DNA from: Macrostomum lignano
Taxonomy: Eukaryota
Direction: 5' to 3'
DNA: 64,000 nucleotides
NCBI GenBank assembly: GCA_002269645.1
Contig: NIVC01000104.1
Coordinates: 496,001-560,000, forward strand
The position numbers and the translations under genes were made by a program. Of the stretch, positions 15,688 to 63,725 are shown in pieces. The notes beneath the pieces were generated by a model. The model had not been told where the DNA came from, searched no databases, and saw only the letters and a program-made list of their open reading frames with translations. Positions within the stretch are counted from its first letter, which is position 1. Each line of letters starts with the position of its first letter.

Positions 15688-15704
15688 CATTCCTGAATCC
15701 GCTG

Positions 15705-36930: not shown

Positions 36931-37413
<483 letters not shown>

Positions 37414-38477: not shown

Positions 38478-41060
38478 CCATCTCACCTTCCATCTCATCT
38501 TCCATCACCTATCTCATCTCCTCTCTCCTATCTTATTTTCCATCTTATCTCCCATCTTATCTCCTATCTCCCATCTCCCATCTCATTTCCCATTTCCCAT
38601 CTCATTTTCTATCTCACATATCGTCTCCCGTCACCCGTCTTATCTTCATCCAATCTTCTATCTCATCTTCCACCCCATCTTCCATCTCATCTCATCCTCC
38701 ATCTCTTAACTCAGCAATTCAATTTAATCTAATCTTCAATCTCCCATCTCATCTTCCATCTCTCATCTTATCTCCCATCTCCGATCCTATTTTCCATCTC
38801 CCAGCTCCCTTCTCAGGCTCTCACCCTGTCCCCATTTAAAGAACGATTCGTTCTTTTTTATTTAATAGGCTAACGAGCCTACATGCGTGTATCAGAAAGT
38901 CCAAAAATATTGGCAACCGATTCCAGTATTAGCAAAAATTGTTTCAATTGGAATTAGGATTTGGAAAACCTGACTGACTGGGGCCTGACCGGCTGACCCC
39001 CCCCCCATCATCGCACGCCAAAGCATAATGCGGAATTCTCATAGGCAAACCCAACGTTACCGATGTTTGACGTAGTGGAGGAGAATAAGGATAGAGAGAG
39101 AGAGAGAGAAACTGAAGAAGAAGACGGAGCGAGGCGTGGAAGCTGTAGAGAACCTCGGAATTGGCTTGGGCATTCGCCTCATCCCAGGCCATGCATATTT
39201 GATGGCCCAGCTCTCTCTCTCTCTGCTCTTGCCCGGCGACCCCTTCACCCCAGCTCCTCTTTTTTAGGCTGGTCTTTTCTCCAAATTACCGAGCACCCGT
39301 CGCCATCTCTTTTGCCTCCTCTCCTTTCTATTCATATGCCTGCAGCCGCTGGGCGGTGCTTTCGGGTTTCGATTATGGGGGAGCTACACAGATGGAGGCG
39401 GAGTGATGTATTTCGATGCATAGAGCCAATTACCACACAGAATTGAAATTCAACAACTTTCATGGTTTGCCTGACGCTGAAGGAGATACACAGAGATAAT
39501 CAAACGCATTGCTCCAGGCCTTGTTCACCTCGTGATGGGCGTGATGCTCTATTAGCATTTTTATTTATAGCTCGTAATTAACTTCAAGTCTCTGTAGCTG
39601 TTGCACTCTCTCGTTTAATTCTTAATCTTGTCCTTCACTGTTCCCTTCTCACTTTTCCGTCATCCCACTCTCCCGTCTCTCCTCTTACCTTCTTCCCTCT
39701 CCCATCATATCTTGTTTCCCTTCTTCCCTCTCCCATCTCCCCTCCTCTCCCATCTCTCTCGCATCCCCCTCCCATCTCTCTCCCATCTCATATCTTGTTT
39801 CCCTTCTTCCCTCTCCCATCTCATATCTTGTTTCCCTTCTTCCCTCTCCCATCTCCTATCTTGTTTCCCTTCCTCCCTCTCCCATCTCCCCTCTCCCATC
39901 TCTCTCGCATCCCCCTCCCATCTCTCTCCCATCTCATATCTTGTTTCCCTTCTTCCCTCTCCCATCTCATATCTTGTTTCCCTTCTTCCCTCTGCCATCT
40001 CCCCTCTCCCATCTCTCTCGCATCCCCCTCCCATCTCTCTCCCATCTCATATCTTGTTTCCCTTCTTCCCTCTCCCATCTCATATCTTGTTTCCCTTCTT
40101 CCCTCTGCCATCTCCCCTCTCCCATCTCTCTCGCATCCCCCTCCCATCTCTCTCCCATCTCCTATCTTGTTTCCCTTCTTCCCTCTCCCATCTCCTCTCT
40201 CCGATCCCTTCTCTCCCATCTCTCTCGCATCCCCCCTCCCATCTCTCTCCCATCTCATATCTTGTTTCCCTTCTTCCCTCTCCCATCTCATATCTTGTTT
40301 CCCTTCTTCCCTCTCCCATCTCATCTTGTTTCCCTTCTTCCCTCTGCCATCTCCCCTCTCCCATCTCTCTCGCATCCCCCTCCCATCTCTCTCCCATCTC
40401 ATATCTTGTTTCCCTTCTTCCCTCTCCCATCTCATATCTTGTTTCCCTTCTTCCCTCTCCCATCTCGCTCCCTTCTCCCATCTCCCATCTCCTATTTCTC
40501 TCCCTTCTCCCATCTCCCCTCTCCCATTTCTCTCCCTTCTCCCATCTCCCTTCTCCCATCTCATATCTTGTTTCCCTTCTCCCATCTCCCCTCTCCCATC
40601 TCATATCTTGTTTCCCTCCTCCCCTCTCCCATCTCATATCTTGTTTCCCTTCTCCCCTATCCCATCTCGCTCCCTTCTCCCATCTCCCCTCTCCTATTTC
40701 TCTCCCTTCTCCCATCTCCCTTCTCCCATCTCATATTTTGTTTCCCTTCTCCCCTCTCCCCTCTCCCATCTCGCTCCCATCTCCCATCTCTCCTCTCTCA
40801 TCTCCCATCTCTCTTCTCTCATCTCCTATCTCCCCTCTCCCATCTCGCTCCCATCTCCCATCTCCCCTCTCCCATCTCTCTCCCTTCTCCCATCTCTCTC
40901 CCATCTCTCGTGTCTCCCATTTCCCCTCCCATCTCCTCTCCCTTTTCTCCCATCTCCCCCCTCTTTTATCTCCCCACTCTCCTATCTACCGTCTCCTATC
41001 TCCCACTCCCATCTCCTCACTCTCACATCTCCCCCCCGTCTCCCCTCTCCCATTTCTGGC
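38478..41060. repeat. Two pyrimidine-rich (CATCT/CTCCC) low-complexity arrays, 38478-38835 and 39640-41060
   Basis: Directly visible; source of the S/P/L/H-rich pseudo-ORFs. Confidence 0.9.
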
Positions 41061-42099
41061 TCTTGTCTCAGATGTGAGATACCTCAGCTCTATTATCCAG
41101 TTCACTAGTCTTCCAAATACTAATCTCCCCTCCAGTCAATATTCTCTCTATGTTTTACATTTAGTAGTCTACATTTTTTCTCCTACATCTTACTTTATTT
41201 CTGGCCTAAATGCACTAAACCGAATCAAAATGCACGCGACATTGTAATCAGAAACTGGAAGGTCACTTTTGTTTAGTTTATCTCAAGTTATGATTATTAA
41301 TAAATCACCTTAGATTTGATTAGTATAGTAAAATTGAAGGAACTGTAGTGTTCTGTTCTGTTTGAGCATCTTAGAGATTCCAGTGTGGTTCCTGCCGGAA
41401 TCCGAGGAAAATTGAGGCCAAGGGTTATAATAAAGAAAAGTGAGTAGTAGGCTGTGTGGTAGCAGCGGGTCTGAGGTTTTGCGAATAGAAAGGGAAATTG
41501 AGCACAGCGTCTCCCGTATGCTTAACCTGCATCAAGAGAGAGAGAAACAGTCTGAGCCCTATGGTGTACAGCAATTCTTGGCTAACATGTCTGGCATTGT
41601 AGAAAATGGACAAGAAAATGAAGAGCTGCGGAAATGACATAGAGAGGGAGGGAGACTTTGCTTGAAGTAGAGCATATAGCATTAGGCTTTTTTCTTGCTT
41701 AACTGCTGCTTCTTGGCTTAAGCTTCCGCAGCCTTGGTTTCCTCTCCTCTCAACGTCTTCTCGGCTCAGATTCCCTCAGATTTTTCTATTCCCTATACAG
41801 CTCTTCAGCTGGTGAAAGTGAAGTGTAAAAAAGTTCTAATTTACTGATTTCAACTAAATTTACTTAATTCACAGTCAGTAATTTGGCATGCTAGGGGAGA
41901 TAGATACGATTAATAAAGAGAAGATGAAGATGAATAAAAATCGTAAGCTGCGCCGTCCCCCTCCGGAGAGTCCACAAGGTGGATGGTCGCTCGCCCGGTA
42001 GGCAGAGATTCTTGGGCATTCTTAACACCGAAGAGGCAGAATGGGCATTCCTCAATGCGGATTTTCCCTGGAGGAAAATAGGGAATTTTATTTAGAAAT

Positions 42100-42482
42100 A
42101 TAGTTTGTTTGTAGTTTAATTTAGTTAGTTTTTTATTAGAGGCAGGATGCTGCGCGCACCCTGGCGCACTTTAAGCGACATTGTCACACAACCGGCGAGA
42201 GGCATTACTGCCCATTCCGCCGACTCCCCTGAGCAGGCACAGAAGCGCGCGGATACGTACTACGCAGTCATACTCGTACGCACAGGCACACACTCACACA
42301 GGAGTGCACAGCGGCCCTAACTTTATTTATCGTTAGGCATGTACACTTACTACACTGTGCCTTGGGGGTTGGTCTTCAAGGCTGTTAATTGCACGAGCAG
42401 AGCCAAGCCGATATTCCAATTCAGCCCGAAATTAATGTGACTCATGCACTTGGAATCGAGCCTGGGCCGCTCTGAGCTACAC
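42100..42482 (-). mobile_element. tRNA-like SINE, copy 2, with A-rich/(CTAA)n tail (in ELAV intron 1)
   Basis: Minus strand reads GTAGCTCAG...GGCTCGATTCC...shared body...GCATCCTGCCTCTAATAAAAAACTAACTAAAC. Confidence 0.75.
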
Positions 42483-43104
42483 TTGCCCGATGGTAAGATT
42501 GAGAAAGCCACGGAGTTCAAAGGGAAATCTTGACGCCCGGCCAAAAAGATGTGTTAAACAATTTCAGTTTAGCTTTGACTTGTCTACTGTGTTCGTCAGC
42601 TATAAGAATAGTATAAAGGAAGACCAAAGCGCTAAGGAGATGCCGTTTGTTAAATTTTTGTCAGAGAGGGACAGATAGACAGACAGAGCGATTAGCAGTC
42701 CTATTGACGTCGCAGCTGTTTAGGATGGTCCAGGCTTGAAAGCTGTTTGCGGGGGCCTCTACTGGCTGACTGGAAATGACTGTGTGCAGCAATGCAGCTT
42801 AGAATCGGCTTTTTAGTGTGGTTCTTCATCTTTGCACGGCTTTGGCTTTTCAGTCAATTTTTTTAGTAATCATTTACGAGACTTACGAGAAGTTTCTCAC
42901 TGCTAGGAGGTGACGGCTCTTTCTTCTGTCCAGCACCGGGGCAAGTGCACAAGTTTTAGTTAAAGTCGAAGTTTTCATAAAAAAGTAATGATTAGGGATT
43001 TTTCATTTTTTTGTGGTTACCCTTTGCTGCAAGTAACTGCTTTCACTCTAAATCTCCTCTTGTGTTTCTTCGTTTGCTTCTCTTTCTCTTATTTTAGCTT
43101 TCAC

Positions 43105-43985
43105 TAACCTCTGTTTTTGCCTTCCTCTATCTACATCTTCATCTCCCTCTCTATCTCCATCTCCGTCTCCATCTCCCTCTCTATCTCCATCTCCATCTTC
43201 ATCTCCCTCTCTATCTCCATCTCCATCTTCATCTCCCTCTCTATCTCCATCTCCGTCTCCATCTCCCTCTCTATCTCCATCTCCATCTTCATCTCCCTCT
43301 CTATCTCCATCTACATCTTCATCTCCCTCTCTATCTCCATCTCCATCTTCATCTCCCTCTCTATCACCATCTCCATCTTCATCTCCCTCTCTATCTCCAT
43401 CTACATCTTCATCTCCCTCTCTATCTCCATCTCCATCTTCATCTCCCTCTATTTTCGTCTCTCTAGCTTCATCACCCTCTATCTCCATCTTCGTCTTCAT
43501 CTCCCTCTATTTTCATCTCTCTAGCTTCATCTCCCTCTATCTCCATCTCCATCTTCATCTCCCTCTATTTTCATCTCTCTAGTTTCATCACCCTCTATCT
43601 CCATCTCTGTCTTCATCTCCGTCTATTTTCATCTCTCTAGTTTCATCACCCTCTATCTCCATCTCCATCTTCATCTCCCTCTATTTTCATCTCTCTAGTT
43701 TCATCACCCTCTATCTCCATCTTCGTCTTCATCTCCCTCTATTTTCATCTCTCTAGTTTCATCACCCTCTATCTCCATCTCCATCTTCATCTCCCTCTCT
43801 ATCTCCATCTCCCTACTTCATCTCCCTCTCTGGCTCTCTATCTCCATCTCCCTCTCTATCTCCATCTCCATCTCCATCTCCCTAGATTCATCTCCCTCTA
43901 TCTTCATCTCTAGCTTCATCACCCTCTATCTCCATCTCCCTACTTCATCTCCCTCTCTATCTCCATCTCCCTCTTTACTTCCATT
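43105..43985. repeat. CT-rich minisatellite, approximately 30-bp unit ATCTCCCTCTCTATCTCCATCTCCATCTTC
   Basis: Directly visible. Confidence 0.9.
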
Positions 43986-44739
43986 TCCCTTATTCTTCCC
44001 TTTAAAAACAATATCGAAGTGGCCGGTGTTTAAATTTTTTTTAAAGTATTAGTCAGTATTCTCATCTCTTTATATAGTTCGTAAATAGTGCAGCTTGTAA
44101 ATAAATGAGAGAAAGAGACTTCGAACTCAGAATAAGAGCAAGGGGGTGAGACTGGACTCTGAGAGAGAAAAATTCGATTGTGCCACTTGTCGATCCAGAA
44201 TCCAGTCGCGAAGCTCATCTGGCTTTGAAGCACCCGTCTCACGTTGGGGCAGTTTGTTGGCCTCACTTCACTCCGGCATGTGTTTATTACGACAGCAGCA
44301 ATGATGGAGCCATGCAGCTGTTGAGTATTCATGAAGTTGGTCCTTTCTCAAGCCGGGGGCGCCCGTATTAGATATTCAATTATTGGCTTTTCCATCAGGA
44401 GGGTCCGTGCGCTCTCAACTTCAAATAAGTACGTCAATAAAGTTGCGCGGTTATCCAAGGTGACTCGGACTTACTATATTCAATCCTGTGCAGCTTCTTT
44501 TCATTTGAAAACTTTGCCAAAGTTAATAGACAGTGCGAAACTTTACTTTTTAATTGCCAGTCACAATCGATAGTTAATCATTACTTTCTACTAGCAGGCT
44601 TTGACTCTTTCAAATGGTTTTTGTTTCCTTTGAAGTGTTTCCTTTTTGGTAGCAATAGAGACTGACAGTGAGGCGCTGTGAACATTGGAAAACCGAGGGA
44701 AGCTAGGTGCAGATAGACAGCCGAAACGGGAAACAGGGA

Positions 44740-45972
44740 GACTGAGCAGGAGACACGGAGAGACTGAGCGAGAGACACGGAGAGACTGAGCGGGAGACAC
44801 GGAGAGACTGAGCGAGAGACACGGAGAGACTGAGTGGGAGACACGGAGAGACTGAGCGGGAGACACGGAGAGACTGAGCGAGAGACACGGAGAGACTGAG
44901 CGAGAGACACGGAGAGACTGAGCGATAGACACGGAGAGACTGAGTGGGAGACACGGAGAGACTGGGTGGGAGACACGGAGAGACTGAGTGGGAGACACGG
45001 AGAGACTGAGCGAGAGACACGGAGAGACTGAGCGAGAGACACGGAGAGACTGAGCGATAGACACGGAGAGACTGAGTGGGAGACACGGAGAGACTGGGTG
45101 GGAGACACGGAGAGTCTGAGCGAGAGACACTGAGCGATAGACACGGAGAGACTGAGCGGGAGACACGGAGAGACTGAGCGATAGACACGGAGAGACTGAG
45201 CGAGAGACACGGAGAGACTGAGCGATAGACACGGAGAGACTGAGTGGGAGACACGGAGAGACTGGGTGGGAGACACGGAGAGTCTGAGCGAGAGACACTG
45301 AGCGATAGACACGGAGAGACTGAGCGGGAGACACGGAGAGACTGAGCGATAGACACGGAGAGACTGAGCGAGAGACACGGAGAGACTGAGCGGGAGACAT
45401 GGAGAGACTGAGCGGGAGACACGAAGAGACTGAGCGGGAGACACGGAGAGACTGAGCGGGAGACATGGAGAGACTGAGCGGGAGACACGGAGAGACTGAG
45501 CGGGAGACACGGAGAGACTGAGCGAGAGACACGGAGAGACTGAGCGAGAGACACGGAGAGACTGAGCGAGAGACATGGAGAGACTGAGTGGGAGACACGG
45601 AGAGACTGAGCGAGAGACACGAAGAGACTGGGTGGGAGACACGGAGAGACTGAGTGATAGACACGGAGAGACTGAGCGAGAGACACGGAGAGACTGAGTG
45701 GGAGACACGGAGAGACTAAGCGGGAGACACGGAGAGACTGAGCGAGAGACACGGAGAGACTGAGCGAGAGACACGGAGAGACTGAGCGAGAGACATGGAG
45801 AGACTGAGTGGGAGACACGGAGAGACTGAGCGAGAGACACGAAGAGACTGGGTGGGAGACACGTAGAGACTGAGTGATAGACACGGAGAGACTGAGCGAG
45901 AGACACGGAGAGACTGAGTGGGAGACACGGAGAGACTGAGCGAGAGACACGGAGAGACTGGGCGGGAGACAT
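44740..45972. repeat. Minisatellite, 22-bp unit GAGAGACACGGAGAGACTGAGC
   Basis: Directly visible. Confidence 0.95.
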
Positions 45973-46481
45973 GATGAAAATGGAAATATTAATTCAAACA
46001 GGCAGCAGCCAATGCCACAACGATACGTCTGGATGATGATCTGTTCACACCCCTCTGAATATGCTCCCCGTGTCGACAGGCGAAATCCTCATTACTTTAT
46101 AATAGCTTTCATCGCTTGTCTTCACTATACTGGTAGGGGCATACCTATTCTTCTTCGTGTCGAAATCTTTGACTTGACTAATAGTGCTTACAATTAACAA
46201 GCATCTTTGTAGGCCTGCTCTGTATGTAGTGCTCAATCATACGGCAGCTATGAGCCCAACAACTCCGGATGAGCTTGGAGTATGCTTTGCCTTGCTTAGT
46301 TTTTGCTCTCACTCACTGGCACTGCATGTTTGAGGGGCTACTTAGGCATTCCGGAAATTTGAACGGCTTTTGGTTTCTACTTTTTCGTACGGCATCTACT
46401 GCATCTGTCGCTTTATCTCCCTTCTTGCGTCCAATCATTCTCTGTTATTGTGGTTTCCTATTCCCGATTCTGTTATTGCCT

Positions 46482-46550
46482 CTGTCTGCCTGCCTGACTG
46501 CCTGCCTGTCTGCCTGCCTGTCTGTCTGTCTGTCTGCCTGTCTGTCTGCC

Positions 46551-46595
<45 letters not shown>

Positions 46596-46616
46596 GTCTG
46601 TCTGTCTGTCTGTCTG

Positions 46617-46649
<33 letters not shown>

Positions 46650-46661
46650 GCTGCCTGTCTG

Positions 46662-46709
<48 letters not shown>

Positions 46710-46745
46710 GATTGACTGACTGACTGTCCGTCTGTCTCTCTGTCT
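46482..46745. repeat. (TCTG)n microsatellite
   Basis: Directly visible. Confidence 0.95.
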
Positions 46746-47219
46746 GCCAATTTTTCAGGCTGTCTTTGTACCCAGGTGACCCAAGTGCCGCTGACGTGTC
46801 TGACTGCTACGAGAAGCCATTTGTTAATTTTTATACTATCGGACCGAAAGAATCAGCTTCAAAATCTTGGCCACACAGGCAAAATCAAAAGGAGATTATT
46901 GAATAAAGCTGTCGTTTCCCCTTTTGAATATGATTTAAGCAGTTCCGCTAATCTCTGTTCTTTTTTTCCTAAATCCGTTTTACCTATAGACTGCTTCTTA
47001 GCCGTGCTTTTTCACTTATTTCAAAATCTGTTAAGTATTATACAATACAGAGGAAGTTACTTTTGCAACGATTGGATATAATTGACCAAAATACTCGTAA
47101 CACTTTAATGCGTTGATATTAAATTCTATAAATAAATATATGTAATGGAGATTCTGAATTGTTAGAAATGATCGTAAACCATGACACCTTGACAAACCGG
47201 AATGACCTTAAAGATTAAG

Positions 47220-48000
47220 TACAGATGAACCGGGATGATCTTAAAGATGACAACAGGAGAAACCGAAATGACCTTGAAGATCACACATGGATGATCCATG
47301 TATCTGGGATGATCTTGAAGATCACACATGGATGATCCATGTATCTGGGATGATCTTGAAGATCACACCTGGATGATCAGGGAATCTGGGATGATCTTGA
47401 AGATCACACCTGGATGATCCGGGAATCTGGGATGATCTTGAAGATCACACCTGGATGATCCGGGATGATATTGAAAATGACACCCAGATGAATCATAGTG
47501 ATCATAAAAATGACACCTGGATTAACCATAGTGATCATAAAAAATGACACCTGCATAAACCATAGTGATCATAAAAAATGATACCTCGATGAGCCAGAGT
47601 GATCATAAAAAATGACACCTGGATTAACCATAGTGATCATAAAAATGACACCTGCATGAACCATAGTGATCATAAAAAATGACAGCTCGATGAGCCAGAG
47701 TGATCATAAAAAATGACACCTAGATGAACCATAGTCATCATAAAAAATGACACCTCGATGAGCCAGAGTGATCATAAAAAATGACACCTAGATGAACCAT
47801 AGTGATAATAAAAATGACACCTCGATGAGCCAGAGTGATCATAAAAAAATGACAGCTCGATGAGCCAGAGTGATCATAAAAAATGACACCTAGATGAACC
47901 ATAGTCATCATAAAAAATGACACCTCGATGAGCCAGAGTGATCATAAAACATGACACCTAGATGAACCATAGTGATCATAAAAAATGACACCTAGATGAA
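47220..48000. repeat. Compound minisatellite (about 41-bp GATCTTGAAGATCACAC unit grading into about 35-bp GATCATAAAAAATGACACC unit)
   Basis: Directly visible. Confidence 0.9.
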
Positions 48001-48037
48001 CTGAGAAAGTGACCTTAAAATGGACTCATCTAGATGA

Positions 48038-48217
<180 letters not shown>

Positions 48218-48404
48218 TAACTATAGAAATTTTGTTTTGTTTCTAACTACCAAAAATACAGTTGCAGTTGGTTCTCTTAAGCTTCGATTCTAAAGCCTCT
48301 AGTTCCCCAATTTTTCAAATCCCAAATCCTCTATAATCGTAATCCAGGACTAAAAAATAGCTGAGCTGTTCTGCCTAAGCTCACAGATTCCTAATAAATT
48401 ATAG

Positions 48405-48584
<180 letters not shown>

Positions 48585-48643
48585 TAAAAGCTTGAAAAGA
48601 ATATAAAAATTCACTACTTGCGCTACTTACAGTAGCTTAATAA

Positions 48644-48964
<321 letters not shown>

Positions 48965-48984
48965 TAAGATTAGATAAGGGCTAA

Positions 48985-49265
48985 GCGGAGTGGGGTGGGT
49001 GCTAGGCGGAGTGGGGTGGGTGCTAGGCGGAGTGGGTGGGTGCTAGGTGGAGTGTGGTGGGTGCTAGGCTAGGCGGAGTGGGGTGGGTGCTAGGTGGAGT
49101 GGGGTGGGTGCTAGGCGGAGTGATGTGGGTGCTAGGTGGAGTGGGTGGGTGTTAAAAGATAGCTGGCTAGGCGGGTGGGGTGGGTGTTAAAAGTCAGTGG
49201 CCTTGGCAGAGTGGGGCGGGTGTTAAACAGACAGCTGTGAGAAAGTGTGCTAGGCGGAGTGGGAT
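48985..49265. repeat. G-rich approximately 20-bp repeat (GGGTGGGTGCTAGGCGGAGTG), reverse-complementary to the 49648-50738 array
   Basis: Directly visible in ELAV intron 4. Confidence 0.9.
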
Positions 49266-49352
49266 ACAACAGGTCAGCTGTTAGTATGTGCTATTCAATA
49301 TATTAAATGCTAGGCTCTATCTATTAAATCCCTTGAACTCGTCATGACATAG

Positions 49353-49643
49353 GTACACCCCGCTAGAAGGTTGCGCAGTTCCCGTGCGAGCTCTCGCCTC
49401 AACTCTGGCCGCTGCTGCCGCGGCCGCCCCGACAGGCCCCACAGGTCGTCCGTTGACCGTCGGCACCCCGGCGTCAGCTGCGGCCGCCGCAGCCGCAGCA
49501 GCAGCAGCCGCCGCCTTCACAGGGCAGTCATTGTGCCCGGTTGTGTCCTTGGCCACCGCGCCCGCGCCCACTGTATTAACTGGCGCCCCGGCTGGCGCTT
49601 TACACTCGGCACCAGCCTCAGCTTTTGCCGCTGGATATGGCGG
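49353..49643 (+). CDS. ELAVL: ELAV/Hu-family protein, exon 5 (Ala-rich hinge), 291 nt, phase 2-2
   Basis: CATAG|G acceptor gives R|YTPL, matching the ELAV hinge R-F/Y-S-P; poly-Ala coding sequence; donor CGG|GTAAGA. Confidence 0.82.
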
Positions 49644-49647
49644 GTAA

Positions 49648-50738
49648 GACTGGCCTTTAACGCCCACCCCACTCCGACTAGACTACTGACTTTTAACACC
49701 CACCCCACTGCGCCTAGACCATTGACTTTTAACACCCACCCCACTCCGCCTAAACCACTGACTTTTAACACCCACCCCACTCCGCCTAGACCACTGACTT
49801 TTAACACCCACCCCACTCCGCCTAGACCACTGACTTTTAACACCCACCCCACTCCGCCTAGACCACTGACTTTTAACACCCACCCCACTCCGCCTAGACC
49901 ACTTACTTTTAACACCCACCCCACTCCGCCTAGACCACAGATTTTTAACACACCCTACTCGGCTTAGACCACTGACTTTTAACACACACCCCACTCCGCC
50001 TAGACCACTGATTTTTAACACACACCCTACTCGGCTTAGACCACTGACTTTTAACACACACCCCACTCCGCCTAGACCACTGACTTTTAACACACACCCC
50101 ACTCCGCCTAGACCACTGATTTTTAACACACACCCTACTCGGCTTAGACCACTGACTTTTAACACACACCCTACTCCGCCTAGACCACTGACTTTTAACA
50201 CCCACCCCACTCCGCCTAGACCACTGACTTTTAACACACACCCTACTCCGCCTAGACCACTGACTTTTAACACCCACCCCACTCCGCCTAGACCACTGAC
50301 TTTTAACACCCACCCCACTCCGCCTAGACCACTGATTTTTAACACCCACCCTACTCCGCCTAGACCACTGATTTTTAACACCCACCCCACTCCGCCTAGA
50401 CCACTGATTTTTAACACCCACCCCACTCCGCCTAGACCACTGATTTTTAATACCCACCCCACTCCGCCTAGACCACTGATTTTTAACACCCACCCCACTC
50501 CGCCTAGACCACTGATTTTTAACACCCACCCTACTCCGCCTAGACCACTGATTTTTAACACCCACCCCACTCCGCCTAGACCACTGATTTTTAACACCCA
50601 CCCTACTCCGCCTAGACCACTGATTTTTAACACCCACCCCACTCCGCCTAGACCACTGATTTTTAACACCCACCCCACTCCGCCTAGACCACTGATTTTT
50701 AATACCCACCACGCCCCGCCTAGCCAGATATCTTTAAA
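49648..50738. repeat. Minisatellite, 39-bp unit CCACTGACTTTTAACACCCACCCCACTCCGCCTAGA-type
   Basis: Directly visible in ELAV intron 5. Confidence 0.95.
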
Positions 50739-50810
50739 GACCAACCGAACTCTGCGTTACAAATTTATGTCAATTACACCCTATATTTCTCCCCATTCTT
50801 TTAATTTCAG

Positions 50811-50826
50811 TGCTCTGGATCTACAA
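50811..50826 (+). CDS. ELAVL: ELAV/Hu-family protein, candidate 16-nt microexon (G-ALDLQ)
   Basis: Strong acceptor CCCCATTCTTTTAATTTCAG and donor CAA|GTGAGT; converts phase 2 to phase 0, which is needed to reach the polyQ frame of the last exon. Confidence 0.65.
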
Positions 50827-50906
50827 GTGAGTTCGTTGAGCCGTGTCTGACAGATTCCTCTATAACAATGCTCCCCTGTCTGATAGCTGATCCCTCTATC
50901 TAACAG

Positions 50907-51161
50907 GTTTCAATCCCCATCATTCCTTCGCTCCAACCTCTCCAGTTACCCGCAGCCTACGCTGCAGGCTCGTGGCCATCTGCCGCTCCAATGCTCGCTC
51001 CCTACATTGTCTGCAAGACAGGTCAGCCAGCAGCTGTCAGCGGCATTGCTGAGCACAGCGGCGCTGGCAACAGTTCCGGCGTGAGCGCCGGCGGACTCTA
51101 CAGCAACTCAGCTGCCGAATTTTTAGCTCATCTCTATCCCGCCTGCTCACCGCATTCAATC

Positions 51162-51193
<32 letters not shown>

Positions 51194-51230
51194 ATTCTTA
51201 GATCCATGGGCCACCGCTCAGTTTATGTAG
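50907..51230 (+). CDS. ELAVL: ELAV/Hu-family protein, terminal exon (low-complexity, polyQ; no RRM3)
   Basis: Acceptor CCCTCTATCTAACAG|G; phase-0 frame VSIPIIPS...QQQQQQQQQQQFLDPWATAQFM* ends at 51230; an alternative frame ends at TGA 51082-51084. With all 7 exons the CDS is 1491 nt (496 aa). Confidence 0.75.
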
Positions 51231-52689
51231 CTTGAAATGCATATCACAATAATTCATTTAGCTTAGCTCACTAGGTGTCACTTACCACTCCCTCCGAGTT
51301 CGAATCGAATTAATGCACAGTTGTTATTTAATGCATGCTTTATTTAATTCCTCACTGTGTAGTGTAGCACAGTGCCGCCACTGTCCTTCTGGAGGTGGGG
51401 GTCAATTCAGGTCACGCAATGCCTTTTTGAAGGTCAATTCAGGTCATGCAGGGTCATTTTAGGTCACATTATAAAATATCACTGTCCTTCTGAAGGTTAT
51501 TTGAGGTCACGCATTCTGGAGGGTCAATTGAGGTCACGCAATGCCCCTGTCTATATGATGGGTTATTTCAGGTCAAATGCCCATGTGTCAATGAGAGGAC
51601 ATTTAAGGTCAATTCTATAATTTTCTTGCATTCATAGTGTGCACTTTTAATTAATCAAATCGAGTACTTATTCTTGTCTTGCCTTTCCAGCTTGCACAAT
51701 TTACTCTATGCATAATTTGCTGTACAGGGGCAGCAGGTTGTTAGTGCAAGCTTATTATTTCATTGCCATAGCATTGAGTGCACTTGCACTTGTACATGCG
51801 TCAAGTTCATTTGTCCATAGGAAAGCGAACAAATACACAAAAGATAAGCTAATTCAGTCAGTATCTAAGCTTTCTATAAAGACGGTCTTGTTGCCTATTC
51901 TGCAAGTGTTATTCTTCAACTACTTTGAGTAGTGCTAACACGAAAAAAATCGTGTCGCGAGCGAACCAAGCCCCTTTAATTTGATTTTCTCAGAAGAAGA
52001 AAAATTGAATGCACAGTTTGTGCGTTTTTTTTAATTGCGACTCTGTTCCTATCGGTTTGTTGCTGTTTAAGTTTTCTTTTAGTTTCAATATCGTTCTGTT
52101 CGTGTATGAATTCTTATCCTGTTTTTCATCCGCTTTTTTGGTTTTTGGTGTCCGGAATGAGCTTGCTTATTGCACTACTTACCCCGGCTTTGGCAAGTGA
52201 GTAGTGCGAAACGCGAATTATCCAATTATAATCATAGTTTAAGTATATAATCTCAGTTATTTTCTGTTCAGTTAATTTTTGTTTAATATCCATTTGGCAG
52301 GCCAATACGCCTGGATTATAAGACTGTTACTAATTTTATAAAATAGTTTGTCGCCGGAACTAAGCAAGCACAACTTCATTTTTACAAGTACAAATTAATA
52401 GTTAGCTACTATATGCTTTTTGTTGAGCTAAATTGGGCTTGGCGTTAATCGAATTTAATTGTAATGTTTTATGGCTGTTTATTGTTTAATGTTGTCTCAT
52501 CACCAGCTTCAATGTTTAGTTTGGTTTTATTTTGTAATGCACTGTGAAATCCCACTGATTCCACAGTTGCTCACACGTATGTAATAATAAATCCTCTGTG
52601 TGTTGAAATCTTAGACACCAGCTCACCGTTATTGCCAGATCCTCATAACTGTCGCTGGTGACTTCCGATGGTGTCTTAGTGATGAGGTC

Positions 52690-53530
52690 AAGTGTCAGTG
52701 ATGGGGTCAAGTGTCTTAGTGAGGGGGTCAAGTATCTTAGCGAGGGGGTCAAGTGTCTTAGTGAGGGGGTCAAGTGTCTTAGTGAGGGGGTCAAAAGTGT
52801 CTTAGTAAGGGGGTCAAGTGTCTTAGTGAGGGGTCAAGTGTCTTAGTGAGGGGTCAAGTGTCTTAGTGAGGGGGTCAAGTGTCTTAGTGAGGGGTCAATT
52901 GTCTTAGCGAGGGGGTCAAAAGTGTCTTAGTGATGGGGTCAAGTGTCTTAGTGAGGGGGTCAAGTATCTTAGCGAGGGGGTCAAAAGTGTCTTAGTGATG
53001 GGGTCAAGTGTCTTAGTGAGGGGGTCAAGTATCTTAGCGAGGGGGTCAAAAGTGTCTTAGTGAGGAGGTCAAGTGTCTTAGTGATGGGGTCAAGTGTCTT
53101 AGTGATGGGGTCAAGTGTCTTAGTGAGGGGGTCAAGTGTCTTAGCGAGGGGGTCAAAAGTGTCTTAGTGAGGGGGTCAAGTGTCTTAGTGAGGGGGTCAA
53201 GTGTCTTAGCGAGGGGGTCAAAAGTGTCTTAGTGAGGGGGTCAAGTGTCTTAGTGAGGGGGTCAAGTGTCTAGTGAGGGGGTCAAGACCGCCAATAGGTG
53301 TTTAGTGAAGGGGTCAAGTGTCTTGTGACAGGGTCAAGGTGTCTTGCGAGGGGTCAAGGTATCTAATGAGAGGGTCAAGGTGTCTTGCGAGGGGTCAAGG
53401 TATCTAGTGAGAGGGTCAAGGTGTCTTTTATAGTTGTCAAGTGTCTGATGTGAAGGGTCGTGGTGCTACTTTGGGGTCAGGTATCTAGTGAGATTGGTCA
53501 TAGTAACTTGTCAAGGGGTCAAGGTATCTA
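52690..53530. repeat. Minisatellite, approximately 21-bp unit GGGGGTCAAGTGTCTTAGTGA
   Basis: Directly visible. Confidence 0.93.
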
Positions 53531-53805
53531 TAGAGTGGCGTTGGGTGGTGCAATATGTACACAGGTGCATGAGTAGCTATAGAAGAAAAAGCTCCAGCCA
53601 TATGCTCACTATGGAAGCACCGCGCGCTATGCAGGCAAAGGTTTGAGATCCAGCGAATGAGGATTCTTAAGTGTCAGATGCACTTTGCTCCAAGTTCATC
53701 ATTTTTTCTTTATGGTATTGAATTAGTTCAAACCCACGATGATTAGAGCTTCAATACAAATTAATTAAGCAAACGGCAATTGTATTTATGCTAATTAGAT
53801 TCTGC

Positions 53806-53819
53806 GTTTCCATGGCAAC
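53806..53819. promoter_or_regulatory. RFX X-box GTTTCCATGGCAAC
   Basis: Exact match to the canonical GTNNCCATGGNAAC X-box, about 470 bp upstream of the Ig-gene ATG. Confidence 0.6.
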
Positions 53820-54284
53820 GCGCGGTGTGTAGCTCAGCAAATATTGTGGAGAAAAAAGCCGCTATGGGTACCTGGAGTGGTGTGGCACTACTCCTAAATG
53901 GGGGATTAAGTTAAGTGCGCCTTCCATTCTGATGCAGTAATAACCAAGCCTAAAACAATATAAGGCATTAATAATTCACAGTCCTAGATTATGAAGTACC
54001 TGAGTCTCTACAATATAATTGCGTGCGTGTGGTTTTTTTCGGCATTCTATTTGTCTGTATGTAGCACCCCGCTGTGACTGCAATTGGCTAGCCCTGTTTG
54101 AGCTAGTAGGGCTTGGATTGGCTGTGCTCAGAAATATTAAGATCAACTCAACTTGGCCTCAGTTAGAGTATTGCTAGACTTTTGGCCTCATTTAATTCAA
54201 CGATTATTTTAAATGCTACAGGTGGACTCAAATTTAACTAGGAAAAGTTAGCTGGAAATGCTGGACTGAATATTTCTGATAGTT

Positions 54285-54348
54285 ATGGAGTATTGCTACA
54301 TGTTCTGTCTTCTGCTTCTGCTGCAGCCTCTTCTGGTGTCCTCCGTTG
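54285..54348 (+). CDS. Signal-peptide exon of a DPR/ZIG-8-like Ig-superfamily protein
   Basis: MEYCYMFCLLLLLQPLLVSSV followed by TTG|GTGAGT (phase 1), which joins in frame to the exon at 63162. Missed by the ORF track because it is short. Confidence 0.75.
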
Positions 54349-54379
54349 GTGAGTGCAGAACACTTGGCCAATATATTTG

Positions 54380-55500
54380 ACACCTGACTGACCCCTTGAA
54401 TAACTATTTATAGGCATTGATATTGACTCCTGACTGACCCCTTGAATAACTATTTATAGGCATTGATATTTGACCTCCCCTGACTGACCCCCTTAAATCA
54501 ATATATATAGGCCTCTATATTTGACTTTCACTGACTGACCCCCTTAAATCAATATATATAGGCCTATATATTTGACTTTCACTGACTGACCCCCTTAAAT
54601 CAATATATATAGGCCTCTATATTTGACCTTCACTGACTGACCCCCCCTTAAATCAATATATATAGGCCTCGATATTTGACCTCCCCTGACTGACCCCCTT
54701 AAATCAATATATATAGGCCTCGATATTTGACCTTCACTGACTGACCCCCTTAAATCAATATATATAGGCCTCGATATTTGACCTCCCTGACTGACCCCCT
54801 TAAATCAATATATATAGGCCTCTATATTTTACCTCCACTGACTGACCCCCTTAAATCAAAATATATAGGCCTCGATATTTGACCTCCCCTGACTAACTGA
54901 CCCGTTGAGTCACTATAGGCCGATATTTGACCTCCCCCTTAATTAATAATAAGTTTCACGTTGGCTTCCGCTGTCTGACTCGTTTAGATATTCATAATTA
55001 TGCTTCGAACTGACCTCCTCATTTCACCCCACCTTAGATAACTTGACCCGGAGTTGACCTCACTAACCTGACCCCCTCTAGATCATTATGTCTCAACTTG
55101 ACCCCTCCCCCTAGGTACTTATTCCTCAAGCTGACCACCTCTATCTGACCCCCCCCCCCCTAGATACTTATTCCTCAAGTTGACCTCCCCTATCTGACCC
55201 CCCTAGATACTTATTCCTCAAGCTGACCTCCTCTATCTGACCCCCCTAGATACTTATTCCTCAAGTTGACCTCCCCTATCTGACCCCCCTAGATACTTAT
55301 TCCTCAAGCTGACCTCCTCTATCTGACCCCCCTAGATACTTATTCCTCAAGTTGACCTCCCCTATCTGACCCCCCTAGATACTTATTCCTCAAGTTGACC
55401 TCCCCTATCTGACCCCCCTAGATACTTATTCCTCAAGCTATAACCTCCCTTGTGTGACCCCCCTAGACTTATTCCTTGAGTTGACCCCCATCTGACCCGT
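54380..55500. repeat. Two adjacent TTGACC/TGACCCC minisatellites (about 51-bp unit at 54380-54945; 43-bp unit at 55040-55500)
   Basis: Directly visible in intron 1 of the Ig gene. Confidence 0.9.
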
Positions 55501-56404
55501 CCCCAGAATACCAGACCTAGGTTACCTTCCTCATCGAAGACCCCTAAGATGCCTTAGATTCTTTTAGCTTCGAATTGACCTCTCTTTATCTGAACCCTCC
55601 CCCCACCTGTTGACCCCACCCCAAAGACAGCTGCTTGAGCATGCACGTACACCAGACCGTCTCACACTCCACGAATTCCTCACTCGATCGCTGCAATGTC
55701 TCTGTAGGCAGCCCGACCCCTGCAGCTCCTTACACGTGCATATATATGCTCACACACACATATTGCTCAATCACTGCAACTGCATGGCAACACCAGCAGC
55801 CCGCAGCAATAGAGTGACGCCTGCGATCGAGGCTCAAGAGGCTCATTCAAATTCCTGTCTCGCGCCTCAGTGAGTCCCAGGGGGGGGGGGGGGGCAGCGA
55901 TCCAGTAAGCCTAAAGGCACACATCGCTTTTTAGCATATCTATAGCGAGCCCGAGCCGCGTTCGTGGGATCTCAACTGCGCTAGGGGATATAAATTTCCC
56001 CGAAATTCTTGCCCCTAACCTCCTCCCGTCTCTAATTTGGTCCATGTGGCGCGTTGAGGCCATTCCCGGGCCATGCAACACCTCCTGTATGCCTGGTGCA
56101 ATCTCTCTCTCTCTCTCTCTCTCTCGCAAATTTTTTCACTACTTTTATGTGGACGTTACGAGTATTTTATATGCATATAAATCGTATTTCTTGGCAGCAT
56201 TTTGTTACAATTTATTATTATTATGCCTGCCTGAATGCCTGCCTGCCCAAATGCTGGTATTGTTTACTACACTCCTCCACGGATTGCCGGCATCTGATCT
56301 GGTTTTGGTGACCATCCTATCGCTGTGTGTCTTCTACATGTACATGTATTCATGTATTGTGTATTGCCTATCCTCTATTTACTATGTCGGCTTTTCTTTC
56401 ACTT

Positions 56405-57030
56405 ACCCTTCTCTCATATCTCCCCTAGCTCTCTCCCATCTCCCCTCTCTCCCATCTCTCTTCCCTTTCATCTCCCTCTCTCGTCTCCCCTTCTCTCCCA
56501 TCTCCCCCTCTCCCATCTTTCTTCCCTTCCATCTCCCTCTCTCATCTCCCCTCTCTCCCATCTCTCTTCCCTTTCATCTCCCTCTCTCATCTCCCCTCTC
56601 TCCCATCTGTCTTCCCTTCCATCTCCCTCTCTAATCTCCCCTTCTCTCCCATCTCCCCTCTCTCCCATCTCTCTTCCCTTTCATCTCCCTCTCACATCTC
56701 CCCTTCTCTCCCATCTCCCCTCTCTCCCATCTCTCTTCCCTTCCATCTCCCTCTCACATCTCCCCTTCTCTCCCATCTCCCCTCTCTCCCATCTCTCTTC
56801 CTTTTCATCTCCCTCTCTCATCTCCCCTTCTCTCCCATCTCCCCTCTCTCCCATCTCTCTTCCCGTTCATCTCCCTCTCTCATCTCCCCTTCTTTACCAT
56901 CTCCCCTCTCTCCCATCTCTCTTCCCTTCCATCTTCCTCTCGCATCTCCCCTTCTCTCCCATCTCTCTTCCCCTTCATCTCCCTCTCGCATCTCCCCTTC
57001 TCTCCCATCTCCCCTCTCTCCCATCTCCTG
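56405..57030. repeat. CT-rich low-complexity array
   Basis: Directly visible. Confidence 0.9.
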
Positions 57031-57564
57031 TTATTATCTCAGTCTTCTATAAGCTCTCTTTAATTGATTCAAACCTCAGCAAAACACTTTTAGCCTCTTC
57101 ACTTTTTAGGTAATTAAATTTTACTTAAATAATTGATGAGTTGGTCATTAAATCTGTCAAGTCAACAATGCTTTCCTTCATTAATTCGAGTGGCTATTGC
57201 CCGTAGGTAGGTTAATGCTAATGCAATAACTATGAAAATGAATTTGATTATGAAAGACGAATGCCAACACTCTGTAGGAAAATTTCCAACATTCACTAGT
57301 AAGAAAAGTCAATGCAGTGGGCTTGAGCAAACACAACAGTTAGCAAAGCTTTTCACTTTGGGAAAAAATCCCAAAATATTTCTGAATGATCCACTCAAAA
57401 GTTTCTTAAGACGCAGCTGTGTCTGTCTGCCTTTCACTCCTCTGTTGCCCTTGGCTTGGTTTCGCCTCTTGCCGTGGCGTTTTTTATCTCGATCTCTCAC
57501 TTTGACAGCTGCTCTGGGTTTGCTTAACTGATTAATGCTCAGTGTTGGGGTTTTAATTAGGTTG

Positions 57565-59280
<1,716 letters not shown>

Positions 59281-59737
59281 CTTCCCATGCTCTCTCCTCC
59301 CCACCCTCTCTTTCATTCACTCTTCTCTCTCATTTTTCCTTCTTGGCCTCTGCTTGCTGTAAGCTTAAACTATCTCCACCCAACTCAGCTTTTACGCTCA
59401 CCCACATCATATCTCCTGCACTCCAAATTCGAAATTCCCTAACCGACCTCATCGTTCTCAAAAGATCTCGCCCTCTTGAGAGCGAAATCATCACTCCCTG
59501 CCCGTCTCCATTAGTTCAACGGCGCAGTTCCTTTAAAATCTTTGATCCCATGGGCAGTCCTGTGGGAAATCGCTCTAAATGGAGTGTCAAGCACGTGTCA
59601 TACGGGTCTGCGAACTACATGTACCAGTTCATGAATTTTGCAAAAATTTTCCGGGATAAAATTCTGATTAAAGAAAATATATTTGTTCAATTTCAATTAG
59701 CGTCAGTTGTATAATGTACGATGATTGAGGTTAGAAC

Positions 59738-60474
59738 AGTCAGTCAGTCAGTCAGTCAGTCAGTCAGTCAGTCAGTCAGTCAGTCAGTCAGTCAGTCAGT
59801 CAGTCAGTCAGTCAGTCAGTCAGTCAGTCAGTCAGTCAGTCAGTCAGTCAGTCAGTCAGTCAGTCAGTCAGTCAGTCAGTCAGTCAGTCAGTCAGTCAGT
59901 CAGTCAGTCAGTCAGTCAGTCAGTCAGTCAGTCAGTCAGTCAGTCAGTCAGTCAGTCAGTCAGTCAGTCAGTCAGTCAGTCAGTCAGTCAGTCAGTCAGT
60001 CAGTCAGTCAGTCAGTCAGTCAGTCAGTCAGTCAGTCAGTCAGTCAGTCAGTCAGTCAGTCAGTCAGTCAGTCAGTCAGTCAGTCAGTCAGTCAGTCAGT
60101 CAGTCAGTCAGTCAGTCAGTCAGTCAGTCAGTCAGTCAGTCAGTCAGTCAGTCAGTCAGTCAGTCAGTCAGTCAGTCAGTCAGTCAGTCAGTCAGTCAGT
60201 CAGTCAGTCAGTCAGTCAGTCAGTCAGTCAGTCAGTCAGTCAGTCAGTCAGTCAGTCAGTCAGTCAGTCAGTCAGTCAGTCAGTCAGTCAGTCAGTCAGT
60301 CAGTCAGTCAGTCAGTCAGTCAGTCAGTCAGTCAGTCAGTCAGTCAGTCAGTCAGTCAGTCAGTCAGTCAGTCAGTCAGTCAGTCAGTCAGTCAGTCAGT
60401 CAGTCAGTCAGTCAGTCAGTCAGTCAGTCAGTCAGTCAGTCAGTCAGTCAGTCAGTCAGTCAGTTAGTCAGTCA
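59738..60474. repeat. Near-perfect (CAGT)n microsatellite, about 180 units
   Basis: Directly visible. Confidence 0.98.
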
Positions 60475-60825
60475 GCGCATTGCATGCTCAGCCGCTTGAG
60501 TAAGCAAAGTATGATTGAATGTAAACAGTACCTGCCCCCCTATACCCGCCGCTGAGGTTGACTCAATGTGATGAAGTGGAAGAGAGTTTGAGCAATGGAC
60601 TCAATTGAATGAGTGGAGACCGGCTCTCTTTAAAAATATCTTTGCCCACCGCATCGACACTTGCGCAGTGCTGTGTCTGGCTGTCTAGCCATAGCAGTGG
60701 CGAATCTGCTGTTGCTTTTACATCTCAGACTAGCAAACCAAAAAGCACAGGAAATGTATAAAAAAACTTGGCAAAGTGCAGGTGCAAAGGTGGAAATGAG
60801 ACGGTGAAAATGGAAAGATTGAAGT

Positions 60826-61475
60826 TGAAGGACAGGTGAAGGGAGAGGACAGGTGTGAAAGGGAGAGGACATGTGAAGGGGGAGAACAGGTGCAGGGAGA
60901 GGACATGTGAAGGGAGAGGACAGGTGCAGGGAGAGAACATGTGAAGGGAGAGAACAGGTGCAGGGAGAGGACAGGTGAAGGGAGAGGACAGGTGAAGGGA
61001 TAGGACAGGGGAAGGGAGAGGACAGGTGAAGGAAGAGCACAGATGCAGGGAGAGGACAGGTGAAGGGAGAGAACAGGTGCAGGGAGAGGACAGGTGAAGG
61101 GAGAGGACAGGTGAAGGGATAGGACAGGGGAAGGGAGAGAACAGGTGCAGGGAGAGAACATGTGAAGGGAGAGAACAGGTGCAGGGAGAGGACAGGTGAA
61201 GGGAGAGGACAGGTGAAGGGATAGGACAGGGGAAGGGAGAGGACAGGTGAAGGAAGAGCACAGATGCAGGGAGAGGACAGGTGAAGGGAGAGGACAGGTG
61301 AAGGGATAGGACAGGGGAAGGGAGAGGACAGGTGAAGGGAGAGGACAGATGCAGGGAGAGGACAGGTGAAGGGAGAGGACAGATGCAGGGAGAGCACAGA
61401 TGCAGGGAGAGGACAGATGCAGGGAGAGGACAGATGAAGGGAGAGGACAGATGCAGGGAGAGCACAGATGAAGGG
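60826..61475. repeat. Purine-rich minisatellite, 17-bp unit GGGAGAGGACAGGTGAA
   Basis: Directly visible. Confidence 0.93.
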
Positions 61476-61911
61476 ATGAAGGGAACGGACACATCGAATT
61501 GGACCAGAGTGCCGCGGTACCGCAGTGTGAAGAGTGCATGAATAGAACAGAAGAACGTGAATATTCAAGCGGGCAGAGTTGGCGCAGCAGAGATAAATCA
61601 GTGTCTGGGCTGGACCAGTCGAGCATAAAATGACTGAGAATTTGATTGCAGCAGTGCTAAGAATCGAGTCAATCTTTGGCTGCATGCACTTCAAGTGGCT
61701 GAGAGGGAAAAGCAATCCCATCTTAGAAAGGAGTGTGAGAAGCTGGATAAGGTACTCGAAAGTATTGTCGAGAAAGATCTTGACCTCGCCTCCGCTTTCA
61801 ATTTTTTGTAGCGAGACTCAAGTCTTTTTAAGTTTTGTTCTTTCAATCAAATTTCACTTTAGCACTGTTAGACTTTTCTAAGAATAAGAAAATATTTTTC
61901 TTTTTTAGCAA

Positions 61912-63130
61912 TGGTTGTCCAGAGTGGTGCCAGTTTAAGTGTCCGGAGTGGCGCCAGTTGGGGTGTCCGGAGTGGCGCCAGTTGGGGTGTCCGGAGTGGC
62001 GCCAGTTGGGGTGTCCAGAGTGGTGCCAGTTTAAGTGTCCGGAGTGGCGCCAGTTGGGGTGTCCGGAGTGGCGCCAGTTGGGGTGTCCGGAGTGGCGCCA
62101 GTTGGGGTGTCCGGAGTGGCGCCAGTTGGGGTGTCCGGAGTGGCGCCAGTTTGGGTGTCCGGAGTGGCGCCAGTTTGGGTGTCCAAAGTGGCGCCTGTTT
62201 GGGTGTCCGGAGTGGCGCCAGTTTGGGTGTCCGGAGTGGCGCTAGTTTGGGTGTCCGGAGTGGCGCCAGTTTGGGTGTCCGGAGTGGCGCCAGTTGGGGT
62301 GTCTGGAGTGGCGCCAGTTGGGGTGTCCGGAGTGGCGCCAGTTTGGGTGTCCGGAGTGGCGCCAGTTTGGGTGTCCGGAGTGGCGCTAGTTGGGGTGTCC
62401 GGAGTGGTGCCAGTTTGGGTGTCCGGAGTGGCGCCAGTTTGGGTGTCTGTATGGCGCTAGTTTGGATGTCCGGAGTGGCGCCAGTTGGGGTGTCCGGAGT
62501 GGCGCCAGTTGGGGTGTCTGGAGTGGCGCCAGTTGGGGTGTCCGGAGTGGGTGTCCGGAGTGGCGCCAGTTTGGGTGTCCGGAGTGGCGCTAGTTGGGGT
62601 GTCCGGAGTGGCGCCAGTTTGGGTGTCCGGAGTGGCGCCAGTTTGGGTGTCCGGAGTGGCGCCAGTTTGGGTGTCCGGAGTGGCGCCTGTTTGGGTGTCC
62701 GGAGTGGCGCCAGTTGGGGTGTCCGGAGTGGCACCAGTTTGGGTGTCCGGAGTAGCGCCTGTTTGGGTGTCCGGAGTGGCGCCTGTTTGGGTGTCCGGAG
62801 TGGCGCTAGTTGGGGTGTCCGGAGTGACGCCAGTTTGGGTGTCCGGAGTGGCGCCAGTTTGGGTGTCCGGAGTGGCGCCAGTTGGGGTGTCCGGAGTGGC
62901 GCCAGTTGGGGTGTCCGGAGTGGCGCCAGTTTGGGTGTCCGGAGTGGCGCCAGTTGGGGTGTCCGGAGTGGCGCCAGTTTGGGTGTCCGGAGTGGCGCCA
63001 GTTTGGGTGTCCGGAGTGGCGCCAGTTTGGGTGTCCAAAGTGGCGCCTGTTTGGGTGTCCGGAGTGGCGCCAGTTGGGGTGTCCGGATTGGCGCCAGTTG
63101 GGGTGTCCGTATGGCGCCAGTTGGGGTGTC
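61912..63130. repeat. Minisatellite, 24-bp unit GTGTCCGGAGTGGCGCCAGTTTGG
   Basis: Directly visible; ends about 30 bp before the Ig exon acceptor. Confidence 0.95.
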
Positions 63131-63161
63131 ACAAGATTGCTTTTCAATTGCATCTCCGCAG

Positions 63162-63313
63162 CAGCACCAGCCAGAATTCCCGGCGCCCACCAGTGCGGCC
63201 ACCCGGGCTACCGGCAGATCTGCTTTGAGGAAGGCGTCAAGTCCAAGCTGGTGTTCGCGGAGCTCGGGACCGCGGTGATTCGATGCGTTGTTAGAAATCT
63301 TGGCCGACACGTG
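63162..63313 (+). CDS. DPR/ZIG-8-like Ig protein, exon with the start of the first Ig domain
   Basis: Acceptor CTCCGCAG|CAG (phase 1, NAGNAG); APARIPGAHQCGHPGYRQICFEEGVKSKLVFAELGTAVIRCVVRNLGRHV resembles the DPR motif xLGxTAxLxCxVxNLGxxx|VSW; donor GTG|GTGAGT. The gene continues beyond the window. Confidence 0.72.
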
Positions 63314-63364
63314 GTGAGTAGGTCTGAGATAGATTTCGGATAGAGTAGAGATAGATTCTGGGTC

Positions 63365-63725
63365 TATGTGGGATACACATGGGATAGAGAATAGGATAGA
63401 CATGGGATAGAGAATGGAATAGACATGGGATAGAGAATGGGATAGACATGGGATAGAGAGTGGGATAGACATGGGATAGAGAATAGGATAAACATGGGAT
63501 AGAGAATAGGATAGACATGGGATAGAGAATGGGATAAACATAGGATAGACATGGGATAGAGAATGGGATGGACATAGGATAGACATGTGATAGACATGGG
63601 ATAAGACATGGGATAAAGAGTGGGATAAGAAATGGGATAGAGAGTGCGATTGACATGGGATAGAGAATATGGGATAGAGAATGGGATAGACATTGGATAG
63701 ACATAGGATAGAGAATGGGATAGAC
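63365..63725. repeat. Minisatellite, approximately 24-bp unit GATAGACATGGGATAGAGAATGG
   Basis: Directly visible. Confidence 0.9.

Follow-up and report, generated by a model that had tools for sequence, protein, structure and literature searches.

The Srrm3/Srrm4 (eMIC) neural microexons are mostly frame-preserving, have a UGC located shortly before their 3' splice site, and are included in a switch-like manner that is specific to neurons. The coding microexon of MPC1 is constitutive and only 4 bp long, so its length is non-3n (PMC9929638). The conserved microexons of plants are often missed by annotation (PMC8831610). Alternative hinge microexons have been reported in the ELAV/Hu family for HuB-D of vertebrates, fne of Drosophila, and elavl2 of bee (exons 4c and 4d), and the skipping of the exon 4 variants of bee elavl2 leads to a frameshift (PMC8553928). 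The ancient hinge microexon of the family is located between ...RFR and FSP..., encodes the motif [LM]Lx[IVM]x2-5G[VLI]xR, and preserves the frame (PMC8553928). The third RRM of ELAV/Hu proteins has been implicated in multimerisation (PMC2275111). Two ELAV-like genes of Macrostomum lignano have been described as testis-specific, which are melav2 (PMC2795745) and the ELAV4 homolog that has been used as a reporter (PMC5730564).

The ELAV-like gene reported here was delineated using tblastn with human HuR together with the splice sites. The gene lies within the window, which is the whole stretch of 64,000 nucleotides of M. lignano DNA that was analysed, and it consists of seven coding exons on the plus strand (36994-51230). 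The coordinates of the exons and of other features are shown in Table 1. All introns of the gene are GT-AG introns, and intron 1 (37301-48095) spans 10.8 kb. The identity to HuR is 65-70% over the RRM exons. Exons 1-4 are 99% identical to the M. lignano 'ELAV-like protein' A0A1I8H7Q7. The top database matches of the protein are ELAV-like, ELAV, and Hu proteins, with identities of ~47-71% among the listed hits. In the ELAV/Hu family, the hinge after RRM2 opens with the conserved segment ...HH.Q..R, followed by [FY][ST]P.... The 496-aa protein contains the Pfam RRM_1 domain twice (E = 7.5e-42) and the start of the ELAV hinge (.../YTPLEG across the junction of exons 4 and 5, where slashes mark exon boundaries), which aligns to RMRYSPLAGC of a paralog. 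Exon 5 continues the hinge (YTPLEGCAVPVRAL...), is alanine-rich, and leaves GG of a split codon at its 3' end. Both the start and the end of exon 5 align to the paralog model P0122.

Table 1. Positions of the ELAV-like gene features and of the repeats in the window (position 1 is the first nucleotide of the window)
Feature	Position	Strand	Characteristics
Exon 1, coding part	36994-37300	+	ATG at 36994; N-terminal region and first half of RRM1; donor CTACTG/gtgagt; ends in phase 1
Tandem array	44727-45971		22-bp x 56
Exon 2	48096-48199	+	Second half of RRM1; HuR tblastn
Exon 3	48405-48558	+	First half of RRM2; HuR tblastn
Exon 4	48669-48963	+	Second half of RRM2 and start of hinge, then split codon R; donor AGTTCG/gtaaga
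Satellite, intron 4	48979-49237	+	21- and 35-bp units; reverse complement of intron 5 satellite
Exon 5	49353-49643	+	291 nt, 97 codons, phase 2 at both ends; donor TGGCGG/gtaaga
36-bp tandem repeat	49649-50723	+	29.9 copies; most of intron 5 (49644-50810)
Microexon TGCTCTGGATCTACAA	50811-50826	+	16 nt; third base of split Gly codon and A-L-D-L-Q codons
Intron between microexon and last exon	50827-50906	+	80 nt
Last exon, coding part, inclusion frame	50907-51230	+	107 codons and TAG; acceptor ctaacag/GTTTCA
Skip-frame TGA stop	51082-51084	+	442-aa product; from translation
(CAG)10.7 microsatellite	51162-51193	+	Encodes Q11 run
Tandem array	57570-59298		17-bp x 103
Tandem array	59737-60475		(CAGT)185
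Tandem array	61916-63130		24/48-bp x 26

The microexon is found in the context TTTAATTTCAG/TGCTCTGGATCTACAA/GTGAGT, with tttctccccattcttttaatttcag immediately 5' of TGCTCTGGATCTACAA. Inclusion of the 16 nt gives a protein of 496 aa, the tail of which starts with GGALDLQVSIPIIPS... and ends with ...QQQQQQQQQQQFLDPWATAQFM before the TAG at 51228-51230. Skipping of the 16 nt gives a protein of 442 aa, the tail of which starts with GGFQSPSFLR... and ends with ...ALATVPA. If the intron downstream of the microexon is retained, the protein continues as ...GALDLQVSSLSRV and then reaches an early stop. The preliminary description of this DNA had given the same exon boundaries, the two frames, both product lengths, and both stop positions, and all of them are correct according to our reading of the sequence and the recomputed translation. 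The recomputed translation also bears out that skipping shifts the frame and that both stops are located in the last exon.

The second ELAV-like gene of M. lignano is ~66% identical to this gene over the RRMs. It is represented by three models in one 90% cluster (P0122, A0A1I8IJ55; P0123, A0A1I8GN17; and P0010), all of which are database predictions. Both P0122 and P0123 continue through the hinge as ...PASDFTAALT-G-ALELQ-VPCAANFAWPPCTAVFGRLPDPSPCYSWTAGQYM, where the last part starts with VPC..., and both end with ...YSWTAGQYM. The corresponding region of the inclusion isoform is ...PASAFAAGYG-G-ALDLQ-VSIPII...FLDPWATAQFM. The microexon peptide ALDLQ matches ALELQ of the paralog at four of five residues, or at six of seven with the flanking residues, in the same place. 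ALELQ is read from predicted protein models, in which it appears to be the same peptide at the matching site. The BLASTP alignment of the inclusion isoform with the paralog runs across both junctions (MAFFT agrees), and the C-termini correspond as W-[AT]-[TA]-[AG]-Q-[FY]-M followed by the stop. The frame conserved between the paralogs, from the junction to the stop, is therefore the one that depends on the 16 nt. The skip isoform can be aligned with the paralog over no more than the 21 residues at the start of the hinge. The remaining paralog model, P0010, terminates with ...FTAALT, i.e., at the residue before the split Gly codon, which matches the end of exon 5 and thus fits an intron of the paralog at the same position and in the same phase.

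With its length (16 = 3x5+1), the microexon falls into the 3n+1 class, and of the three length classes only this one gives access to the 107 open codons of the last exon. In the inclusion frame, a TAA at 50901-50903 lies 3 nt upstream of the last-exon acceptor, and the open stretch that follows comprises exactly the 107 codons of the exon (P = 0.04 by composition). Codon usage in the last exon was scored with codon frequencies that had been trained on exons 1-5 versus their own off-frames. The log-likelihood favours the inclusion frame (+23.9 bits) over both the skip frame (-13.4 bits) and the third frame (-19.1 bits). The skip-frame ORF has 58 codons, and a length of at least 58 codons is reached in 30% of the codon-order shuffles of the 107 codons (P = 0.30), so this second ORF carries no information.

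These values bear on the on/off switch that had been claimed for the microexon. In such a reading, the microexon would be a regulated cassette, inclusion of which gives the tail with the Q run and skipping of which gives a functional tail of 58 aa. Both frames are open and both stops are in the last exon, the skip product would be no obvious NMD target, and microexons are often regulated or alternatively spliced. The ELAV/Hu family is moreover known for alternative hinge microexons, one of which causes a frameshift when skipped, namely in bee elavl2 (PMC8553928). However, the length of the skip ORF is as expected by chance, its codon usage is unfavourable, its tail has no similarity to the paralog, and the microexon peptide is present in all full-length paralog models. 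The splice sites of the microexon are also strong, and the nearest upstream UGC is distant from the acceptor. We consider the regulated cassette unlikely. The comparative evidence leans against a switch, given that P0122 and P0123 include the peptide and conserve the inclusion frame to the C-terminus.

The splice sites of the microexon are at least as strong as the other sites of the gene, and the donor is a perfect GTGAGT. The acceptor tract is richer in pyrimidines than that of the last exon and is the first acceptor downstream of the exon 5 donor. Only one TGC was identified in the 100 nt upstream of the microexon acceptor, at -58. Other routes into the long frame were also considered. The acceptors with AG ending at 50945, 50955, and 50967 were rejected, as none of them gives the long frame from the strong exon 5 donor. 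The donor GTATTA at 49573 was rejected, being weak and far inferior to GG/GTAAGA.

Segments that exhibit the strict microexon-like pattern (pyrimidine-rich YAG acceptor, 3-30 nt, and GTRAGT donor) number only five in 128 kb (both strands). Four such consensus-flanked short segments thus exist besides 50811-50826, which could suggest that the 16-nt segment is likewise a chance match to the splice consensus and that the mRNA joins 49643 to 50907 and encodes 442 aa. This is extremely unlikely, because the paralog has the same peptide at the same junction together with the C-terminus of the inclusion frame, and the codon usage points to the inclusion frame as well. The 16-nt segment is more than a chance pattern, as indicated by its rarity, its frame-opening length, and the match of its peptide to the paralog.

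The best explanation, to which we assign a probability of about 0.75, is that 50811-50826 is a genuine coding microexon, constitutive or mostly included, of a two-RRM ELAV-like gene, and that the skip ORF is incidental. We infer both the constitutive inclusion and the order of intron removal. The 80-nt downstream intron would be removed by intron definition, and the exon 5 donor would next pair with the strong and nearer acceptor of the microexon. The microexon would thereby be present in all or nearly all mRNAs. It supplies the last base of the split glycine codon and A-L-D-L-Q, and its 3n+1 length sets the conserved frame of the terminal exon. The 442-aa skip protein would be a by-product of GC-rich, stop-poor sequence and not a second evolved C-terminus, and any skipping would probably give a minor product without the normal tail.

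Skipping could also be an unproductive or down-regulating event that provides no second function, in which the conserved tail and the C-terminal motif are lost and the protein is truncated or unstable. Frameshifting non-3n microexons commonly have such an effect when skipped, and the conserved C-terminal motif is missing from the skip frame. The strong and nearer acceptor argues for efficient inclusion instead, and we judge such an event to be improbable.

Exon 5, which remains in frame if it is skipped, is flanked by mutually reverse-complementary satellites, with arms of 53 nt that show 92% complementarity. At the RNA level, the duplex predicted between the satellites of introns 4 and 5 has an energy of -166.9 kcal/mol, compared with -76 +/- 6 kcal/mol for shuffled partners. 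Pairing of this type, with the two strands on either side of an exon, is the textbook situation for skipping of the exon or for its back-splicing to circular RNA. Each unit of the intron 5 array (~30 copies of 36 bp) consists of a pyrimidine-rich stretch followed by TAG (CACCCACCCCACTCCGCCTAG), which is acceptor-like, and has no GT. Judging from these motifs, the array may present an extended series of candidate decoy acceptors directly 5' of the microexon. It is conceivable, if rather unlikely, that some tissues or stages omit the microexon and so toggle between the conserved tail and the 58-aa tail without NMD, and that the inverted satellites of introns 4 and 5 influence the choice.

Both stops are in the last exon, but the junction-dependent rule that had been called established, under which a stop in the last exon does not trigger NMD, is a vertebrate rule. 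We know of no test of this rule in flatworms.

No third RRM was detected by Pfam in the 496-aa protein or in the paralog model P0122. No RRM3-like sequence was detected anywhere in the 64-kb window using HuR or the C-terminal 110 residues of ELAV-family proteins, which were taken from those of the 120 retrieved proteins with a length of 330 aa or more. The assignment to ELAV is sustained by the tandem RRM1-RRM2 and the hinge start, but the defining third RRM is found neither in the protein nor in the 12.8 kb of the window 3' of the stop. The signals AATAAA and ATTAAA are absent for 1.36 kb 3' of the stop (51231-52591), the first being at 52586, so that the gene has a long 3' UTR or else uses a variant poly(A) signal.

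ELAV/Hu proteins normally have three RRMs, and the tail exon could therefore be one of several 3' ends, with a canonical RRM3 located past 64000 and reached by alternative splicing from exon 5 or the microexon. The size of intron 1 and the short distance from the stop to the end of the window are consistent with this arrangement, as is the position of the first canonical AATAAA. In contrast, no RRM3-like sequence occurs downstream within the window, and both full-length paralog models include the microexon peptide and terminate with the tail, at the corresponding position and without RRM3. A remote third RRM is very unlikely.

The tail of the inclusion isoform has 113 aa, with A, Q, S, and P as its predominant residues. 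It had been described as polyQ/prion-like. Its content of Q and N is 16%, with a single Q11 run that is encoded by a microsatellite and is absent from the paralog tail. A prion-like or polyQ tail would be expected to have a long Q/N-rich stretch shared by relatives, which is not seen here, and the description is not supported. When the last exon was searched exhaustively with HMMER, only one spurious repeat protein was retrieved, and a profile of both tails (this gene and the paralog) retrieved only the paralog cluster. No homolog of the tail outside the two M. lignano genes was identified in 1.8 billion representative proteins. The metagenome scans revealed neither the spliced junction (gap of 0-16 nt) nor relatives of the tail. 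Neither exon 5 nor the tail had a counterpart in the protein collection, as the query of both with low-complexity runs removed had no match at E <= 10. As far as the sequences of the two genes indicate, the low-complexity tail with the W-x-x-x-Q-[FY]-M end is lineage-specific and stands in place of the third RRM in both paralogs.

The label 'neural' that had been attached to the protein is unsupported, and at least one ELAV-like gene of M. lignano is testis-specific. The possibility that the gene in the window is melav2 or the ELAV4 reporter gene, which is testis-specific, was considered and rejected, because the published primers of both are absent from the window. The gene is thus probably neither of the two and represents a further member of the family.

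The public models of this gene end at exon 4. These are P0001 (286 aa, ...SSRV) and P0121 (287 aa, ...SSRVR), and the ...SSRVR end of the latter corresponds to read-through of the exon 4 donor into TAA (CG/GTAA), which follows immediately in intron 4. The donors of exons 4 and 5 (48963-48968 and 49643-49648) are both of the form xG/GTAA, so an unspliced transcript stops at once. The 286-aa model of this gene and a 341-aa model of the paralog both terminate precisely at an exon boundary, and the probable reason is that the older assembly was interrupted by the satellite-filled introns.

For annotation, the full product appears to have 496 aa, and its frame hangs on a 16-nt exon of a kind that gene finders tend to miss. 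More notable than the supposed switch are the two ELAV-like paralogs of M. lignano that have no RRM3 and share a lineage-specific tail and a C-terminal motif. Since the third RRM of ELAV/Hu has been implicated in multimerisation, the two-RRM paralogs may act differently from canonical ELAV/Hu proteins. Regulated skipping, if true, would add one more frameshifting microexon to a kind of event that is already known.

Other features were also identified in the window. The segment 18340-21006 (plus strand) is an open frame of 889 codons with the reverse-transcriptase domain RVT_1 (E = 7e-29), and it is probably a copy of a non-LTR retrotransposon with an intact ORF. The segment 15241-15684 (plus strand) is an open frame of 148 codons in which a Macro domain was identified (E = 2.6e-6), and a tandem repeat in the coding frame (15554-16408) comes next. 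Intron 1 and the region 52671-63725 consist largely of tandem arrays, and the strong GC and AT skews follow the arrays. No notable ORF was identified on the opposite strand, and the region 48000-53000 had no match in Rfam.

Compared with the known systems, the gene differs from the schistosome MEGs, in which many symmetrical microexons make up most of the coding sequence and the product is secreted, as it encodes an RRM protein with one microexon and its other exons range from 104 to 324 nt. The microexon shares with the Srrm3/Srrm4 microexons a size of at most 27 nt and a strong 5' splice site. It differs from them in shifting the frame and in having its nearest TGC as far upstream as -58. 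The microexon belongs to the same gene family as the ELAV/Hu hinge microexons and to the same general region downstream of RRM2. However, the ancient hinge microexon corresponds to the position of intron 4 here, whereas the microexon of M. lignano lies one exon further downstream, encodes ALDLQ, and has a 3n+1 length. The motif of the ancient hinge microexon is absent from all frames of introns 4-6, so the microexon at 50811-50826 is a different one, and homology between the two was rejected on position, peptide, length, and motif.

The protein resembles Sex-lethal, the insect relative of ELAV, in having two tandem ELAV-type RRMs and no third. Unlike Sex-lethal, its best matches are ELAV/Hu proteins and it has kept the R-Y-T-P-L start of the ELAV hinge. 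RRM3 was apparently lost independently in the Macrostomum lineage.

The microexons of MPC1 and of plants share several features with the one described here. All are very short, have strong flanking signals, are needed for the downstream frame, are conserved at the protein level, and are easily missed. The M. lignano microexon differs in that its inclusion is predicted and in that the frame-dependent part is the last exon alone, so that skipping would change the C-terminus and would create no early stop upstream of a junction.
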